Sequence record: MN871440.1
Reading direction: 5' to 3' (one strand)
DNA length: 64,000 nt
This document shows positions 4,712 through 50,929 of this stretch, piece after piece. The translations under genes and the position numbers were made by a program. The notes under the pieces were generated by a model. That model searched no databases. It saw nothing but the letters and a program-made list of their open reading frames with translations, and had not been told where the DNA came from. Every line of letters starts with the position of its first letter. The first letter of the stretch is position 1.

Positions 4712-7700
4712 TTAGTTTACAAACTCAAAGAATACATCACCTTCAATCGGGTTAGCTGGAGCATTAGTAGCAAAGTCACCATAGTAATAACTCTGTACCC
4801 AAGCGCCATTTCTACGTGAGTATCTTGTTCCATTCTCAGGAACATCAAACGCAGAAGTAACAACTTTGTTCCCGTTAACATATGCATCGACGCAGTTAAT
4901 ACGAACTTCGGTTGTTGCATCACCCAAAACAACATGACTGTTACCAGCGACGTTATCTTTGATTGCAATGACGTTTACTTCGGCACCTTTCAACATACCA
5001 GTAATCGCGGTTTGTCCGTTCTGAACTGGTTGTGCCAGTTTAAAATCAAGAACCTTACCTTCAATTTTGGTGTATTGATTTGATTGTCCGACATGAACAA
5101 TATAATCGACGCCTACTAACTCAGCACTACCAACGTTGATGTCATTGGATTTAAATGCCTTTTTAGTATTTACGTCGCTATCTGGGTCCACGCCATTAAA
5201 CACTTTCTGCCAGTTCCCTTGACGTCTTGCGTAATATTCGCCGTCGCTCGGGGCATCAATACCGTCGTGCCATACTCGATAAGACTTCGCGTTGAAACCA
5301 ACGAATGGCTGACGTTCAAAATAAACGGCAGTGTTTTCGTCACCAAGAACAATATCATTTTCGAAGTCAACTTTAACGATTGTTCTAGCTTCGTCCGATG
5401 TGGTCAGACCAACCAACGCTTGCTCGTTTCCGAGTGTCATTGTCTGCAAACGACCTTTAAAGATGATAGGAGATTTGCTGTTGTCGTAACCAATTGCGAT
5501 AGCACCAGTTGACATAGGATTCAATGCATAAACCAGACCGTGATCTGTTGTATTGAACTTGATACCCATGTTTGAACTCATTGCGATATCTTTCGATCCC
5601 AATGCTTCCCAAGTAGCGTTGCCGTTGGTTGATACACGAACATGAGGAAGTCCATTGTTAGGTGCATCATCTGCTAAACCACCACCCGAATCACCGACGT
5701 TGAACGCAGTCCAAACACCATTCTTACGCGCATACATAGCATCGTCTTTTGGTGCATCCAGACCATCGTGCCACACGGTATATAGTGTGTTTGATGTCCC
5801 GCTAACAACTTTAATTGATTTCAGATCATCGCCGTTTGTTCTCAGTGCGGTTCTGGTTTTGGTATCACCAACCTCGACATAATCGTTAGCTGAATAACGA
5901 GTCGCACCGATTTGATTTACGAGAATATTACCGAAAGTATAACCGGTATATTTCGCATCGATAGCAAGACGAATCTTATTAACTTCGCCGTCGATTGATG
6001 TAACCGCGCCGTCTTGTGAGATTCGAACGGTCTTATCAATGAAAGAAGAACCAATGATGTTGATATCACCTACAGCGGTTTCTCCCATGATTTTCTTATC
6101 ACGATTCAATCTGAAACCAACGCGAGGATCGATATCAGAAACGAAATCTTTGATATTCAGAGAGTGAACAACTGTACCAGTTTTTCCGGCGTAATCAACT
6201 GTCAATGATGCGGCATCATCGATAAGGAATTTAACAGGAACACCTTTACCAAATGTATCCTGAGCGTCACCGAACTTAGCTACCGTTTTTGTTCCGTATT
6301 TCAGTCCAGCAACGTCAATTTCATTATTGACTTTGCCGCGAATCTCTACGTCGGTATTTTCTTGACCAAGAACAGTAACTGGCGGTTTATCCAAACGAAG
6401 ACTGAATGAAACTGCGCGTTGACCGTCAAAACTACGAAGTCCTCTGTTTGACCCGATTACCAAGTCATCAGAGAATACGTTTTTCCAGATCCATTTATTA
6501 TCAACATAGCGACGAACGAATGCGGCATCGACGTTTTGATCGTCTGTATCAAGAATAAATCCACTACCGGTTTTAAACGGGATATACATTTCTTCATACA
6601 TCGATTTGTTAGTTGATTTAATGCCAAGTTTTGTAACTGCTGGATCAGCTTCGACGTTTGTTCCATATACATCTGGTTTCAACTTTGCGGCATCTTCTTG
6701 TAAATCTCGAACTGTCGGAGTTGTTTCCAAGTTCAGCGTATCAGTAACAGTTTTAACCAAACCTTCTAGACGAGTTGTGTTGTTTGTCTCACGTAGATCA
6801 AGAGCTTTGATATCACCGCGCATACCGTCAGTCGGTTGAAGTCCAACAATTGTTTCCATGTTATCCAGACGAGAGTCAAGAGTAACACCGTCGTCTTTCA
6901 ATTTCTTGATATCGGCTTTATTTGCTGTTACGTCATTAACAGTTTGATTCAGAATGTTCTGATTGGCACCGACATCACCACGAACAACTTTGGTATATTC
7001 CCAGATGTTATTAACAGTCACTTCGGTACCGCTCTGAGTAACATATTTGATTGGGAAATCAATTTTGCCAGTAGCAATATCCAGATCGCCAAGATGTTTA
7101 TTTGCACCGCCAACATGATCTTCGGCAGTCTTCACTCTTTGATAAATTGTCTTATCGGTTTTTTCTGCGCTTGGACCAATTTCAGCTCGCAGATCTCTTG
7201 TGTTACGAATAAGAATATCTGGAGTATCCCCTTGCCAATATTGCTCAAGACTTGACAAACGATTTTCGTGTTTTACTACGTTTTCCCAGTTGCGCTCAAC
7301 TTGTCCTTTTACACCAAGACCTGGTGCATTTACATCTGGATCTCCGTCTTGATTAAACCCTTTGTAGTTACCAAGCATTTTCTTGATATTAACGATCTGT
7401 GGATCGACAGTTTCAGTAATACGCTTGTTGATTGCTTCGTGACCGGCAACATGAGTAATTTCGTCTTGCTCGATCTTTGTCAATCGATCTTGTTGAGTCT
7501 TATTGATGTTTTCAACGGCGGTAACGCGATCATATAGATTGGTACCATCGCCTTGTGCATTGATAATGCGATCATGAGCTTCAACCAAATCAATGGTTTT
7601 TCCCAGAGAGTCTTTTGATTTATTCAACTCAACGTTAATTTTTTCGACGTTTTTTTGTACCTTAACCGAAGCTCGGTTAAGGGCGCCACCATTGTCGGTG

Positions 7701-33182: not shown

Positions 33183-33197
33183 TTCCAGTCTATTAGA

Positions 33198-33315
33198 ACA
33201 CATTGTCGGGGCGTAGCTCAGACGGATAGAGCAAGTGCCTTCTTATGAACTTTTACGAGAGCACATAAGAAGCACTCGGTCGCTGGTTCGAATCCAGTCG
33301 CCTCGACAATGTGTT
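33198..33315 (+). ncRNA. tRNA-Arg(UCU)-like RNA with a 26-nt anticodon insertion and extended acceptor stem
   Basis: D arm, T arm and acceptor stem intact (33205-33308); AGTGC-CT-TCT-[26 nt]-AA-GCACT; no CCA. Confidence 0.75.
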
Positions 33316-33398
33316 TTACACAACAGAAAAAGTCGCGTCGGAACTGACACTCGTAAAGTCCAATTTTATACAAGAGAGTTCCGGACGCGCATTATTTT

Positions 33399-35965: not shown

Positions 35966-36190
35966 ATGATTAAGTTCTTGTTGATTACTTCGTTGTTCGT
36001 TAACTTTGGTACCAATTATGGCTCACATAGTCATGCAATTGAGAAGTTCGACACCGAAGCAGAGTGCAGAGCCGCGCTGAAAGTCGCGGAAGAAAATGCA
36101 CAAGATACATATGGCGAGAATCGCGTTGGATTCTTCGGTGGTCAAACCAAGTTCGAAGGTCAATGCAAGCCATATTATTACGACAAGTAA
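35966..36190 (+). CDS. small exported protein, probably late
   Basis: Hydrophobic N-terminus; CTAAATA at 35949. Confidence 0.6.
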   Translation: MIKFLLITSLFVNFGTNYGSHSHAIEKFDTEAECRAALKVAEENAQDTYGENRVGFFGGQTKFEGQCKPYYYDK

Positions 36191-36348
36191 AGATTTCGAG
36201 ATTCGAGAAACCGTAAGATCTTTCCGAGCATGTATTGGTGGCATCATGCTCGTATGAACGGGACCAGCGCCCACCTAGCTAGTTGACAGTAGACACTAAA
36301 TAACTTAGTGACAGTGGAACCCCTTGCGCTAACACTGTGATGCGGACT

Positions 36349-36456
36349 GTCTTTTTCTCGGTATGCCGTAAACCTAACGTGGAAGTGAACCCTTATTCGG
36401 TCTTCGGACTCAACCGGCAGTAGCATGAAACAATGTGGGGATATCGAGAAAAAGAT
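36349..36456 (+). ncRNA. structured ncRNA, family B copy 1
   Basis: 16-bp terminal stem; motifs shared with 39086-39216. Confidence 0.6.
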
Positions 36457-36526
36457 TGTTTACTCTATTAAAACACTGTGCTATCATTATCACATGCTCT
36501 TAAAGTAGAGCATAAATAAAAGATAG

Positions 36527-36555
36527 TTTACAGCGTTGATAAACCGTGATACAAT
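36527..36555 (+). promoter_or_regulatory. sigma70-like promoter
   Basis: TTTACA-17-TACAAT; predicted start coincides with the RNA at 36563. Confidence 0.75.
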
Positions 36556-36562
36556 CTTTATA

Positions 36563-36616
36563 AGGCTCCGTTCAGCAATCAAAACTTTTCTGCGGATGAA
36601 AAACAAAAGTGAGCCT
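36563..36616 (+). ncRNA. family A (helix + TTCAGCAA) RNA, copy 1
   Basis: AGGCTC-CG-TTCAGCAATC...AAAAGT-GAGCCT. Confidence 0.65.
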
Positions 36617-36644
36617 GTTAGAGTAAAGATTTAAGAAGTCTTTA

Positions 36645-36673
36645 TTTACAATCACTAAATAGTAGTGTATAGT
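36645..36673 (+). promoter_or_regulatory. sigma70-like promoter with an overlapping CTAAATA
   Basis: TTTACA-17-TATAGT. Confidence 0.7.
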
Positions 36674-36685
36674 AAACAAAGATAA

Positions 36686-36748
36686 AGAGTGATTTCAGCA
36701 ACCAACTTAAAAAGCCATTATTTTGAAATAGCCTATAAAGTTCACTCT
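36686..36748 (+). ncRNA. family A RNA, copy 2
   Basis: AGAGTGA-T-TTCAGCAACC...TAAAGT-TCACTCT. Confidence 0.65.
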
Positions 36749-36774
36749 GTTTCTTATTTGCAAGTTGTTATTTG

Positions 36775-36855
36775 GGAGACGTGGCTCAAAGGTTGAGCGA
36801 CGGACTGTTAATCCGTGAGGTTAACTCTATGCTGGTTCGAGTCCAGCCGTCTCCG
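36775..36855 (+). tRNA. tRNA-Asn(GTT) with a long variable arm
   Basis: ACGGA-CT-GTT-AA-TCCGT; 14-nt variable region; ends G-CAA. Confidence 0.88.
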
Positions 36856-36878
36856 CAAATAACAATTTACCGTGCTAC

Positions 36879-36985
36879 GGAAGATTTCAGCAAACCATTC
36901 GAATTTTTCTATTAACAAGAAAACAGTGAGGTTCGATTCCTCAACTCTCTAGCACAAGAGTCCAGGTGGCAGTTAAAAGTCTTCT
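36879..36985 (+). ncRNA. family A RNA, copy 3, with an internal T arm
   Basis: GGAAGA-T-TTCAGCAAACC...TGAGG-TTCGATT-CCTCA...AAAAG-TCTTCT. Confidence 0.7.
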
Positions 36986-36992
36986 AGTTTAT

Positions 36993-37067
36993 AGCCATGT
37001 AGCTCAGTGGTAGAGCACACCCCTGATAAGGGTGGGGTCGGCAGTTCAATCCTGCCCATGGCTACCA
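36993..37067 (+). tRNA. tRNA-Ile(GAT)
   Basis: Cloverleaf with CCA. Confidence 0.95.
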
Positions 37068-37073
37068 GTTTCT

Positions 37074-37150
37074 AGTGACGTAGTTTAGTTGGTTAAAATT
37101 CCGGCCTGTCACGTCGGAGAGCGCGGGTTCGAGCCCCGTCGTCACTGCCA
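37074..37150 (+). tRNA. tRNA-Asp(GTC)
   Basis: Cloverleaf with CCA. Confidence 0.95.
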
Positions 37151-37213
37151 GTTTCTACCTAGTAGGAAAAATGAACTTACCCGACAGTAGTTCAATGTTC
37201 TTTGAAAATGCAT

Positions 37214-37356
37214 GGATTCACTTCTGCAACCAATACAAAACTTCAAATCTACTATTAAAAGATAGCACTCCTTTACTTCGGTAGTTGGATGTGCGGCTGA
37301 GAGGGAACAGCAGGTAAAAGTAACGTGGGTTAGTCACCACTCCCGTATGTGAATCC
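37214..37356 (+). ncRNA. family A RNA, copy 4 (multi-hairpin)
   Basis: GGATTCAC-TTCTGCAACC...GTGAATCC. Confidence 0.55.
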
Positions 37357-37425
37357 GAAGACTTGCGTAGGTACTTGCATAAAGTGCCTATTCTAATGTA
37401 TACTTGCGAGTATCTATTAGAATTT

Positions 37426-37499
37426 GGGGGTTTAGCTCAGTTGGAACGAGCGACTGGTTTGCAACCAGTAGGTCAAGGGTTCGAGCCCCTTAACCTCCA
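37426..37499 (+). tRNA. tRNA-Ala(TGC)
   Basis: Cloverleaf; ends A-CAA. Confidence 0.93.
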
Positions 37500-37568
37500 C
37501 AAATTTTTAGAGTAGCTATCAGCTCACCGTTGAAAGAATACGGATAAGTCGGCTCGACTACTCGAAGT

Positions 37569-37642
37569 GCCTCATTGGTGTAGTGGTCACATACCGTCCT
37601 TCCAAGTCGTAGTGTCGGGTTCGATTCCCGAATGAGGCTCCA
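37569..37642 (+). tRNA. tRNA-Gly(TCC)
   Basis: Cloverleaf with CCA; weak anticodon stem. Confidence 0.85.
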
Positions 37643-37651
37643 ATTTAACAT

Positions 37652-37726
37652 GCGCAGGTAGCCAAGAGGTAAGGCAAGTGATTGCAAATCACTTTATCGT
37701 CTGTTCGATCCAGATCCTGTGCTCCA
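37652..37726 (+). tRNA. tRNA-Cys(GCA)
   Basis: Cloverleaf with U73-CCA. Confidence 0.95.
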
Positions 37727-37742
37727 AATTGAGAAATAAGTT

Positions 37743-38165
37743 ATGAGCGCACCTAGTTGGGCGCTGTTCATGAAGAACGGCGATTGTGTTGGACACTGCT
37801 TTATCAACTGCGGTTGGTTTCAAGATGATGTTCGAACACTGAGGCAGATCATTAGATATACAGAAACGCCTGAATGTCCTATTGACTTTGATAGCGTAAT
37901 CGCGTATGGTGTTGTCTATAGCGATGATTTGGAATTCGAACTTCTGAAAGCAGAAGAGACGGAAATCAAGTCTAAGCAGATTTCGGCGATTAAAAGACAA
38001 CAGTATTGGGATAAAGGAAATCAAGTGATCTTCAATAGACTTTCTGTTAGTCCTAGACTCGCTCCAAAGCTGATTGCTGATGAAATTTGCGGTGTTCAGC
38101 CTATGTCTGAACATACTTCGAAAATCTATACGCTAAGGGTTGACACCGATGTTGTTTCTTGCTAA
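37743..38165 (+). CDS. hypothetical protein
   Basis: ORF between tRNAs. Confidence 0.65.
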   Translation: MSAPSWALFMKNGDCVGHCFINCGWFQDDVRTLRQIIRYTETPECPIDFDSVIAYGVVYSDDLEFELLKAEETEIKSKQISAIKRQQYWDKGNQVIFNRLSVSPRLAPKLIADEICGVQPMSEHTSKIYTLRVDTDVVSC

Positions 38166-38175
38166 GATACGTTAT

Positions 38176-38349
38176 ATGAAAAGCGAATACATGGGATCAT
38201 CTAAGTCATTCGATACCATTAAGTTGGTAGAAGCGGAAGATGTGGATGATGCCGATTGTAAAGTTCGCGCACATTACAACGATAAAAGTTCGGATTACGG
38301 CACGTATTATTCCGTTCTTGATGTCACAATCGAAGCTCCTATTCTGTAG
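38176..38349 (+). CDS. hypothetical protein
   Basis: ORF. Confidence 0.55.
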   Translation: MKSEYMGSSKSFDTIKLVEAEDVDDADCKVRAHYNDKSSDYGTYYSVLDVTIEAPIL

Positions 38350-38356
38350 GTGAAAA

Positions 38357-38536
38357 ATGAATAAAGTAAGGTTTACAAAGCTTGAGGTTCAGCGTATGAT
38401 GGAACTCATGCAGATGCACGAAACGAACTTGATTGATGTTGAATATCAAAGCGGTTCAATCGGTACTGTAGTTAGTGCTAAAGCTGTCAAAGATGGAGCA
38501 AAGAGCGTTCCTATTACGGATTTTGATAGCTGGTAA
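38357..38536 (+). CDS. hypothetical protein (59 aa; not in the ORF track)
   Basis: AGGTG RBS; MNKVRFTKLEVQRMMELMQ... Confidence 0.55.
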   Translation: MNKVRFTKLEVQRMMELMQMHETNLIDVEYQSGSIGTVVSAKAVKDGAKSVPITDFDSW

Positions 38537-38542
38537 GAATAT

Positions 38543-38613
38543 AGGGGCGTAGCAAATCGGTTATGCGGCGGATTCCAAATCCGTTGAGGTGGGTTCGACT
38601 CCTACCGCCCCTG
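38543..38613 (+). tRNA. tRNA-Trp(CCA)
   Basis: GCGGA-TT-CCA-AA-TCCGT; ends G-CAA. Confidence 0.9.
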
Positions 38614-38622
38614 CAAAACAAT

Positions 38623-38698
38623 GCGCTGTTAGCTCAATTGGTAGAGCTGCGGACCTTTAACCGATAGGTTGGTGGATCATACCCACCACGGCGGACCA
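38623..38698 (+). pseudogene. degenerate tRNA-Lys(TTT)
   Basis: Good D arm and CCA, but the anticodon stem is out of register (apparent 1-nt deletion), T loop is ATCATAC and 1:72 is G-G. Confidence 0.7.
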
Positions 38699-38890
38699 AA
38701 TAGTCGAGTCAAGCAATAGGCTATATACTTATTGCGTGGCGATAGGCTATAAAAAGCGGTGATTGTTGTGTGGGGCGAATAACTTAAACGTTACTATTGA
38801 CACCAACGCGCTTCTTATACTGCGGCCTATATAGCGGTAGTATAAGTTAAATCAATATTATTGCCTCGGTATCGACTCTTGATACCGTAT

Positions 38891-38965
38891 AGTGAATTAG
38901 CTCAGTGGTAGAGCAAGTGCTTCATACGCACTGGGTCACTGGTTCGAATCCAGTATTCACTACCA
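38891..38965 (+). tRNA. tRNA-Met(CAT), elongator type
   Basis: Cloverleaf with CCA. Confidence 0.9.
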
Positions 38966-39012
38966 AATTCAATCGCGCTTAAACCTCTGACTCGTTACGT
39001 TTAAGCCTTCTC

Positions 39013-39085
39013 GGGGACGTAGATAACTTCATAATCGCAGGTCACTGGGATCTGAGATACGAGTGGAAATCCCGCCGTCTCCACC
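39013..39085 (+). ncRNA. degenerate tRNA-like RNA with CCA
   Basis: GGGGACG/CGTCTCC-A-CCA acceptor stem; non-canonical D and T arms; 5-nt central loop. Confidence 0.5.
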
Positions 39086-39216
39086 AAATTTAAGTGCATT
39101 GCCCTAACCTAAATGGGACGAGATAAGCCCTCGTATGTAGCTAAGAGCCGCAAGCTTGTGCGAACAAAGGCTAGTAGGTGGGAACCACCTGCGGGGATCG
39201 CGACAGTGCATTTAAA
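39086..39216 (+). ncRNA. structured ncRNA, family B copy 2
   Basis: 16-bp terminal stem AAATTTAAGTGCATTG/CAGTGCATTTAAATTT; internal hairpins. Confidence 0.65.
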
Positions 39217-39257
39217 TTTGGTACTAAATAGACTTGCTATTAAAGGAGTTTATAGAA

Positions 39258-39497
39258 ATGAGCAATGATTTAGACGCTCGCGCCAATCGTGGCTCGGGTA
39301 ATCAGTGTAGTGCAGCATGGTACAATGCCCCTTTGTGGAAGAACGTTGGACCGCTTGCTAGAAAGAAAGCTGCGGAAGCAGCAGAAAAAGAAAAACAAAA
39401 AGATGTTTACTCTACTGCGGAAACATGCGATAATGTCTCTGTTGTCGAAGAAGACTTAAAAGCAAAACAAAGACGATTGTTTAGTTTCGCTTACTGA
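39258..39497 (+). CDS. hypothetical protein, probably late
   Basis: AAGGAG RBS; CTAAATA at 39224. Confidence 0.6.
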   Translation: MSNDLDARANRGSGNQCSAAWYNAPLWKNVGPLARKKAAEAAEKEKQKDVYSTAETCDNVSVVEEDLKAKQRRLFSFAY

Positions 39498-39577: not shown

Positions 39578-39597
39578 AATTGATTAGTGCGCTAAGA

Positions 39598-39671
39598 TGC
39601 GAGTTGGAGGAGAGGCCGTCCTCGCTGGGCTCATATCCCAGAGATCACCTGTTCGAATCAGGTACTCGCTT
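39598..39671 (+). tRNA. initiator-type tRNA-Met(CAT) without CCA, inside an extended stem
   Basis: 1:72 mismatch and three G-C pairs in the anticodon stem; flanks AGTGCGCTAAGA/TCTTAGCGTACT pair. Confidence 0.75.
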
Positions 39672-39696
39672 CTTAGCGTACTAAATAAAGAATAAT

Positions 39697-50809: not shown

Positions 50810-50929
50810 GGGGAAGTAGCTCAGTGGTAGAGCAGTAGACGCAAAAAGCGGAATCTGAGAAGATTCTTTACAGCAAGCCAACGCAAATTAAACTATTGGT
50901 CGCGGGTTCGAGTCCCGTCTTCCCCGCCA
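50810..50929 (+). ncRNA. tRNA-like RNA with CCA and a 54-nt anticodon insert carrying the permuted family A motif
   Basis: Canonical acceptor, D and T arms; insert GAATCT-GAGA-AGATTC-TTTACAGCAA. Confidence 0.78.

Follow-up and report, generated by a model that had tools for sequence, protein, structure and literature searches.

Two candidate families of folded RNA in the tRNA gene cluster of T4-like Aeromonas phages

The small RNAs C and D of bacteriophage T4 (rnaC and rnaD, also termed species 1 and 2 RNAs) have been known since the 1970s, and no function has been found for them in 50 years. In other organisms, functional RNAs are known immediately 3′ of a tRNA, with one end made by the tRNA 3′-end cut, as in E. 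coli 3′ETS-leuZ and the tRNA-miRNA units of gammaherpesvirus 68. Both T4 RNAs are products of the T4 tRNA region, and their function is unknown (PMC3014915, PMC9697503, PMC12685909). GOLLD and ROOL, which occur in phages and prophages and often lie beside tRNA genes, are ornate structured RNAs whose function is also unknown (PMC5737381). In the RNase III stalks of rRNA operons and of the phage T7 early RNA sites, the sequences on either side of a cargo RNA pair into a helix of about 20 bp, sometimes with an internal loop (PMC3867540). Here we describe two elements, designated A and B, in a stretch of 64,000 nucleotides from sequence record MN871440.1, which we call the window and to which all positions refer unless another genome is named. 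On the comparative sequence evidence given below, A and B are real, conserved, tightly folded RNAs encoded on the + strand, and they represent two separate new RNA families and not two copies of one.

Over positions 36200-39300, the window matches Aeromonas phage AsFcp_1 at 100% identity and PX29 at 98%, and it shows 80-89% identity to Aeh1, Ah1, avDM12-TAAL, phiAS5, and phiWae14, all of these phages being T4-like Straboviridae. Judged by this identity, the window belongs to AsFcp_1, a T4-like phage of the Aeh1/PX29 group. A large tRNA gene cluster surrounds the two elements (22 tRNAs by ARAGORN and 23 by Rfam), and the GenBank records examined carry no annotation at either of them. Element B was found by BLAST, by a covariance model (R1), and in one metagenome scan as a single copy per genome in three lineages: the Aeh1/PX29/phiAS5 group, Aswh_1 with ZPAH1, and Ahp1_CNU-2021 with two metagenome contigs (L183 and L184).

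Element B is composed of the following parts.

39086-39219, + strand: element B, whole RNA, 134 nucleotides (nt), or 133 nt if it starts after the A of the upstream CCA
39086-39101, + strand: 5′ strand of P1 (AAAUUUAAGUGCAUUG), pairing with 39204-39219
39102-39105, + strand: 5′ strand of P1b (CCCU), pairing with GGGG at 39193-39196
39118-39134, + strand: P2 hairpin (ACGAG-AUAAGCC-CUCGU) with a 5-bp stem and a 7-nt loop, supported by covariation
39126-39129, + strand: 5′ strand of the pseudoknot (AGCC in the P2 loop), pairing with GGCU at 39169-39172
39140-39161, + strand: P3 hairpin (GCUAAGAGC-CGCAA-GCUUGUGC) with the invariant pentaloop CGCAA
39162-39173, + strand: junction J3/4 (GAACAAAGGCUA), with invariant CAAA.GCUA, holding the 3′ strand of the pseudoknot
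39174-39192, + strand: P4 hairpin (GUAGGUGG-GAA-CCACCUGC), five of its eight pairs changed on both sides
39197-39203, + strand: 7-nt bulge (AUCGCGA) between P1b and P1 on the 3′ side, containing a 6-nt palindrome
39204-39219, + strand: 3′ strand of P1 (CAGUGCAUUUAAAUUU), pairing with 39086-39101

The three hairpins P2-P4 are arranged on a four-way junction, and the P2 loop reaches the P3/P4 junction through the pseudoknot. In nine sequences from the three lineages, 95.2% of the alignment cells are paired and 18 of the 44 pairs are changed on both sides. None of 500 shuffles was as good, and pairing drops to 28-43% when the partners are slid. The 16-bp stalk P1 is changed on both sides in eight pairs and is paired in 99% of the cells. 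The inner helix P1b is putative, as its CCC and GGG are invariant in the nine sequences and show no covariation. P2 is paired throughout (100%), with A-U replaced by G-C in two lineages, and its loop, (A/C)UAAGC(C/A), is nearly invariant. The pseudoknot pairing AGCC:GGCU is also 100% paired and becomes AGCA:UGCU in the Ahp1 lineage. In P3, the inner helix GAGC/GCUU is replaced by GGAC/GUCU in Ahp1 and the outer helix by AUGGU/ACCAU in Aswh_1. Two versions of the bulge hexamer occur, UCUAGA in PX29 and Aeh1 and UCGCGA in most phages. Each is self-complementary, and the palindrome survives the double change.

The strand of B is assigned as + because of its conserved G-U pairs and because R1 matches on the + strand only. 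The conserved G-U pairs of both A and B would become A-C mismatches if read on the other strand. The + strand of B folds better than dinucleotide shuffles (z = -2.9), and the - strand folds less well. A coding reading of the A and B regions is excluded, because the relatives differ by insertions or deletions of 1-3 nt and the substitutions within stems are compensatory. An earlier sequence-only reading of the window had ended B at 39216, which is corrected here to 39219. The limits that it gave for A (36349-36456) stand, as do the 16-bp terminal stems of unrelated sequence that it reported in the two elements (36349-36364/36441-36456 in A and 39086-39101/39204-39219 in B).

In every lineage, B starts immediately after the CCA end of a preceding tRNA or tRNA-like gene. 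The gene at this position in the window has two features of interest.

39013-39086, + strand: tRNA-like gene immediately 5′ of B; its acceptor stem has 7 bp, its 3′ end is ACCA, and its T loop is non-standard
39083-39086, + strand: ACCA 3′ end of this gene, which can pair with UGGU at 39219-39222, giving a precursor stalk of 19 bp

The tRNA-like gene has an anticodon-like stem of 5 bp with the loop CACUGGG, and its T loop reads UGGAAAU, not UUCRANY. It is called neither by ARAGORN nor by the Rfam tRNA model, shows a weak match to transfer-messenger RNA (tmRNA; E = 0.0056), and is kept in all relatives including Ahp1. In Aswh_1, B is preceded by tRNA-Leu, which ends at position 4919 of that sequence (L007). 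In L183, tRNA-Met (1704-1779) is followed by B from 1780, and the arrangement is the same in L184. In Ahp1, an open reading frame (ORF) of 47 amino acids (aa) is inserted between tRNA-Met and B. The insertion is flanked by a 13-bp direct duplication (CCAATTTCAAAAC), which preserves the CCA and the start of the stalk at each of the two junctions. Although the stalk sequences are unrelated, pairing at the outer end of the B stalk can continue for another 3 bp in the Aeh1 group and in Aswh_1 and for another 2 bp in the Ahp1 lineage. Because the ORFs 3′ of B are unrelated among the three lineages and the CCA link is constant, B is tied to the tRNA on its 5′ side and not to the downstream gene.

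Two observations concern the neighbours of B in other genomes. The inserted 47-aa ORF of Ahp1_CNU-2021 (L008, 3489-3690) is hydrophobic, and the insertion is missing in the metagenome relatives L183 and L184. In Aswh_1, the annotated coding sequence ASwh1_266 (5029-5421) starts within element B (4920-5057), and the ATG at 5080 is a more probable start.

Element A is shorter, and its fold is partly resolved.

36349-36456, + strand: element A, whole RNA, 108 nt, supported by R2 matches and pair counts
36349-36364, + strand: 5′ strand of P1 (GUCUUUUUCUCGGUAU), pairing with 36441-36456
36366-36367, + strand: 5′ strand of P1b (CC), with partner GG at 36438-36439 and a 1x1 mismatch between P1b and P1
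36368-36382, + strand: junction J1 (GUAAACCUAACGUGG), with the motif GUAA..C(N)UAA seen in alignments
36383-36394, + strand: P2, a putative weak hairpin (AAG-UGAACC-CUU)
36399-36410, + strand: P3 hairpin (GGUC-UUCG-GACU), supported by covariation
36423-36436, + strand: P4 hairpin (GCAU-GAAACA-AUGU), with variant stems in relatives
36441-36456, + strand: 3′ strand of P1 (AUAUCGAGAAAAAGAU), pairing with 36349-36364

For the Aeh1-group copies of A, a fold consisting of the stalk, the 2-bp inner helix, the UUCG hairpin, and the 3′ hairpin is paired in 96.3% of the cells, with seven compensatory pairs, and none of 500 shuffles was as good. The 16 bp of P1 include G-U pairs, and five pairs are changed on both sides among relatives. 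In the Ahp1 lineage, the stalk is unrelated in sequence and still pairs (GCUUA(G)UCUCUGUAUA / UAUACAGAGAUAAGU). P1b changes from CC/GG to CU/AG in phiAS5, which is a double-sided change, and reads CU/GG in L183. P3 is CCUC/GAGG in phiAS5 and GC-UUCG-GC in the Ahp1 lineage. P4 varies as UAGCAU/AUGUUG in avDM12, AGUAUCA-GAAG-UGAUGCU in phiAS5, and ACGC-GAG-GCGU in the Ahp1 lineage. The 5′ third of A is conserved in sequence (GUAA..C(N)UAA ... AGU(N)GAA), the J1 motif being kept in three of three lineages, and its pairing is weakly defined. In P2, Aeh1-group phages form 2-3 bp and the Ahp1 lineage 6 bp (UAGUUG-AAA-CAGCUA), and the P2 loop is not conserved. As with B, the + strand folds better than dinucleotide shuffles (z = -2.7) and the - strand less well. 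Two other folds were rejected. A rod-like consensus from RNAalifold contains short helices that the Ahp1-lineage copies do not keep, although they retain P3 and P4, and an alternative hairpin CCGU/GUGG fits the Aeh1 group but is impossible in the Ahp1 lineage. One alignment (A7) was excluded because it contained a reverse-strand match and long inserts.

Upstream of A is a 74-aa ORF with its stop at 36190, and downstream are three tandem early-type promoters (36459-36673). These promoters are of the sigma-70/T4-early type with GTTTAC-type -35 boxes and stand ahead of tRNA-Asn, the first beginning 3 nt past the A stalk. A GTTTAC -35 box overlaps the end of A likewise in the Ahp1 lineage. Just upstream of A, at about 36205-36300, there is a further structured piece. 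It contains a hairpin (CGAGCAUG/CAUGCUCG) whose GGUGG loop is able to pair with the CCACC loop of the next hairpin (ACCAGC/GCU(A/G)GU), and the stems of both hairpins show covariation in Aeh1, avDM12, and phiAS5 (alignment A6). Possibly, A belongs to a larger structured 3′ region that spans about 250 nt. A kissing interaction between the CGCAA loop of B and a CUUGCG loop upstream of A was considered and rejected, as it is not kept in phiAS5 or Aeh1.

Searches with covariance models delimit the distribution of the two elements. R1, built for B, matched 11 loci in the three lineages at 120-158 bits. R2, built for A, matched every Aeh1-group phage at 109-128 bits and found divergent copies at E of about 1e-3 in Ahp1 and the two metagenome contigs, where the genomic position upstream of tRNA-Asn is the same. 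In the tRNA regions of phages 65, avDM6, AS-zj, and AP1, neither model found A or B. Pattern scans of IMG/VR, JGI metagenomes, and GTDB genomes returned known Aeromonas phages, two Ahp1-like metagenome contigs, and chance matches only, the negatives holding at the stringency used. BLAST queried with the divergent copies gave no further homologues.

Long helices around small RNAs are also found elsewhere in the cluster. Flush leader-trailer helices of 12-15 bp flank three of its tRNAs, compared with 7.8 +/- 1.7 pairs at random positions.

36762-36774 and 36856-36868: leader-trailer helix flush with tRNA-Asn
39584-39604 and 39664-39684: leader-trailer helix flush with tRNA-Met(CAU)
33194-33213 and 33299-33318: leader-trailer helix flush with a 100-nt tRNA-like gene

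They are partly kept, with changes, in avDM12 and phiWae14. Stalks are a recurring device in this tRNA cluster.

On balance, we favour the reading that A and B are independent, stalk-bounded stable RNAs, cut from transcripts of the tRNA region by host RNases, whose cores bind a partner in trans. Both share a build in which the two ends form the 16-bp stalk and the conserved core carries three hairpins at a four-way junction, the core of B being locked by the pseudoknot between the P2 loop and the P3/P4 junction. P1 would serve as a module for processing and protection. In the precursor, the stalk of B would run on into the CCA end of the tRNA or tRNA-like gene before it. Because the stalk thus includes the upstream CCA, a single cut could finish the tRNA 3′ end and make the 5′ end of B. 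The precursor stalk of 18-19 bp is a plausible target of a host nuclease specific for double strands or for tRNA 3′ ends, with RNase III, RNase BN/Z, and RNase E combined with trimming as the candidates. Once released, the RNA would be expected to persist because both of its ends are buried in a helix. Separated from the ends by 16 bp or more, the conserved core would then act in trans by binding a protein or another RNA. Transcription of A and B, their processing enzymes, their stability, and their role in trans are predicted here from sequence. The position of the invariant core, 16 bp or more away from the ends, speaks against self-cleavage at the tRNA junction and in favour of a separate job, which is most likely the binding of a protein or RNA in trans. 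B may also act as a dimer through its palindromic bulge.

A more specific version of this reading goes further, and we put it forward as speculative and rather doubtful as a whole. B would be a new tRNA-linked class whose core binds a host factor, e.g., a tRNA-processing, tRNA-repair, or anti-phage tRNA-targeting enzyme, and which forms a homodimer via the bulge (UCGCGA/UCUAGA); A would be a second, independent class of analogous build. B as a new ribozyme or ligand sensor is less likely than this host-factor-binding version.

The best-surviving alternative is that A and B are purely cis-acting processing or insulator elements, that is, RNase III-type sites which part tRNAs from mRNAs and whose excised pieces have no function. 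The helices of 18-19 bp flush with a tRNA end, the similar stalks around three tRNAs of the same cluster, and the location of A exactly between an ORF and a promoter cluster would all fit this explanation. A helix alone, however, suffices for a cleavage site, whereas the interior of B has the invariant UAAGC, CGCAA, and CAAA.GCUA as well as the pseudoknot, and that of A keeps GUAA, AGU.GAA, and UUCG. The loops are kept across lineages with unrelated stalks, and we regard a purely cis-acting role as unlikely.

It is improbable that A and B are divergent copies within a single RNA family sharing a fold and a function, as the sequence-only reading had proposed. The proposal draws on the same order of parts (a 16-bp stalk, an inner helix of 2-4 bp, a junction of 12-15 nt, and three hairpins), on a similar size, and on the location of both elements in the same genome region. 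However, neither covariance model detects the other element. R1 gives 7.8 bits on the + strand of A, via the terminal stem alone, and 8.0 bits on the - strand, and R2 does not match B at E <= 10. Local alignment of the interiors gives z = 0.01 against shuffles for the pair in the window, and the scattered p values of 0.01-0.05 among 36 lineage pairs equal the chance expectation. The invariant positions differ between the families, which have no conserved nucleotides in common, and the pseudoknot and the 7-nt bulge of B have no counterpart in A. Common to both is the layout only, with the stalk, the short inner helix, and the three hairpins in the same helix order. A very distant common ancestry of the two is conceivable.

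The internal motifs on which the one-family proposal was based are present in the window as quoted, but as a shared ordered set they do not rise above chance and lie at variable positions. AACCUAA of B reads UACCAUC, AAACAUC, AGACAUC, AUACACC, UACUAAU, or AACACGCC in relatives. Of the two hairpin loops said to correspond, the AUAAGCC hairpin of B is confirmed by covariation, whereas the UGAACC loop of A is not conserved and its hairpin is weakly supported. The UUCG hairpin of A covaries, but the GCGA arm proposed for B (UUGU-GCGA-ACAA) is not kept; relatives have GCAA, AGCAAU, or CAUAA at the position of the loop, and the same bases are used by the covarying P3 with CGCAA. The 3′ hairpin following AGTAG covaries in both elements, but AGUAG itself is the 5′ strand of P4 and varies in both. 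GGGGAU is not a common motif either, as it consists of P1b and the bulge in B and of P1b and the stalk in A. The wider expectation of functional RNA folds, with conserved loops on variable stems, is borne out by the covariation among homologues of A and of B.

That no known class fits, as was also suspected from the sequence, is supported by searches against Rfam 15. At gathering and permissive thresholds (E <= 10), nothing in the window overlapped A or B, the only matches being tRNAs, and the divergent copies gave no match at E <= 1 or E <= 5. The classes covered include the twister, pistol, hatchet, HDV-like, and hammerhead ribozymes, raiA, GOLLD, ROOL, YrlA, and riboswitches. Neither element is a tRNA, as ARAGORN and the Rfam model RF00005 find no cloverleaf with a T-loop. 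P2 of B has the geometry of an anticodon arm (a 5-bp stem and a 7-nt loop), but its loop is engaged in the pseudoknot. A scan for intrinsic terminators found no terminator-like site at A or B.

These results bear on the remaining alternatives. The compact pseudoknotted core of B, its invariant junction nucleotides, and its placement where a cut is needed could indicate a new small self-cleaving ribozyme, in B or A, that cuts the polycistronic transcript. We consider this very unlikely: the Rfam ribozyme models are blank even at E <= 10, the tRNA junction lies, by its geometry, at the far end of a 16-19-bp helix and probably too distant for catalysis by the core, and other tRNA junctions in the cluster have no such elements. 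Still less probable is that B is a riboswitch or leader of the small downstream ORF (39258-39497). B is located 38 nt upstream of the start of this ORF, and its four-way junction with a loop-to-junction pseudoknot is aptamer-like, but the three lineages have unrelated ORFs at this place, P1 with its 16 bp is too stable to switch, and B has no expression platform, overlapping neither a Shine-Dalgarno sequence nor any terminator. A DNA-level feature, such as a miniature inverted-repeat element or a protein-binding palindrome, or a chance inverted repeat would provide 16-bp terminal inverted repeats around about 100 bp, but it is scarcely credible given the conserved G-U pairs, the compensatory changes in four or five helices, the terminal repeats that differ by lineage yet still pair, and the single copy per genome at a fixed position.

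Several points weigh against our favoured reading of A and B as processed, trans-acting RNAs. A lies upstream of the three promoters of the tRNA operon, outside the operon proper and without an adjacent tRNA, so that the tRNA-linked part of the model does not apply to it; A could instead be a 3′-untranslated-region structure of the preceding ORF. In B, the support for the pseudoknot comes from one evolutionary event only, and the palindrome switch in the bulge likewise traces to a single event. As far as the sequences indicate, the distribution is narrow and patchy, with A and B confined to a few Aeromonas T4-like phages, and the ORFs neighbouring A and B have no recognisable function. The public sequencing runs with this DNA are wastewater or other environmental libraries, and the four that were mapped gave cross-mapping tRNA fragments only, with no informative signal at A or B.

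Two further features of the tRNA cluster may be recorded. Rfam tRNA matches at 33207-33306 (100 nt) and 50810-50926 (117 nt) are not called by ARAGORN and are possibly tRNAs with insertions; the counterpart of the former is annotated in the PX29 record as a tRNA-Lys joined from two pieces. Within the cluster, a 140-aa ORF (37743-38165) has a short stretch similar to the N-terminal end of gp23, the major capsid protein (Pfam PF07068, residues 104-134).

A and B add two new RNA families to the annotation of a familiar type of locus, the T4-type tRNA cluster. To our knowledge, no other small RNA of such a cluster has been structurally defined, and for B we now have a pseudoknotted fold supported by covariation, together with loops that do not vary and a fixed association with the 3′ end of a tRNA. 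Both RNAs are small enough for probing, pull-downs, crystallography, and cryo-electron microscopy. If the cores bind host factors of tRNA processing or defence, RNA players would be added to the tRNA-centred arms race between phages and bacteria, and host-factor-binding classes would give a first handle on the purpose of the enigmatic small RNAs of T4-type tRNA clusters. If they are processing cassettes only, they would illustrate how maturation is organised in a phage that carries more than 20 tRNA genes.

Comparison with the known systems places B and A differently. SAM-I-type riboswitch aptamers have a four-way junction of P1-P4 and a pseudoknot from the P2 loop to the P3/P4 junction. The layout of B is like theirs, but there is no match in sequence or to a model, P1 of B has 16 bp, and B has neither a conserved downstream gene nor an expression platform. 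GOLLD and ROOL differ in scale, with 500-800 nt and many junctions, whereas A and B have 108-134 nt and no Rfam match. The RNase III stalks resemble the present ones in their two-turn flank helix, which has 16 bp plus 2-3 bp into the CCA in B and 16 plus 2 bp across the mismatch in A. The cargo here, however, is a conserved folded core and not rRNA, and cleavage of the A and B stalks is putative.

The T4 RNAs are the closest in setting. The T4 record places rnaC and rnaD in tandem directly after tRNA-Arg. R1 and R2 have no match in the T4 region, and rnaC and rnaD used as queries on the window (blastn and nhmmer) retrieved tRNA T-arms only. Unlike A and B, T4 rnaC is tRNA-like and has a T-arm. 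Kinship of rnaC and A through a 10/11 match (UGCCGUAAGCC / UGCCGUAAACC) was rejected as being about at the chance level (estimated p of about 0.1); in rnaC, the UGCCGUAAGCC match is one strand of a long hairpin, a structural context unlike that in A. The likeness to rnaC and rnaD is one of size and place, in that these are RNAs of 119-139 nt in the tRNA gene region, head to tail after a tRNA CCA end. The location directly 3′ of a tRNA is not found for A, but it is found for B in all three lineages. A similar arrangement is seen in the 3′ETS-leuZ and gammaherpesvirus 68 units, which differ from B in organism, size, and fold, and with which B would share, if its putative processing occurs, an end made by the cut that finishes the tRNA.

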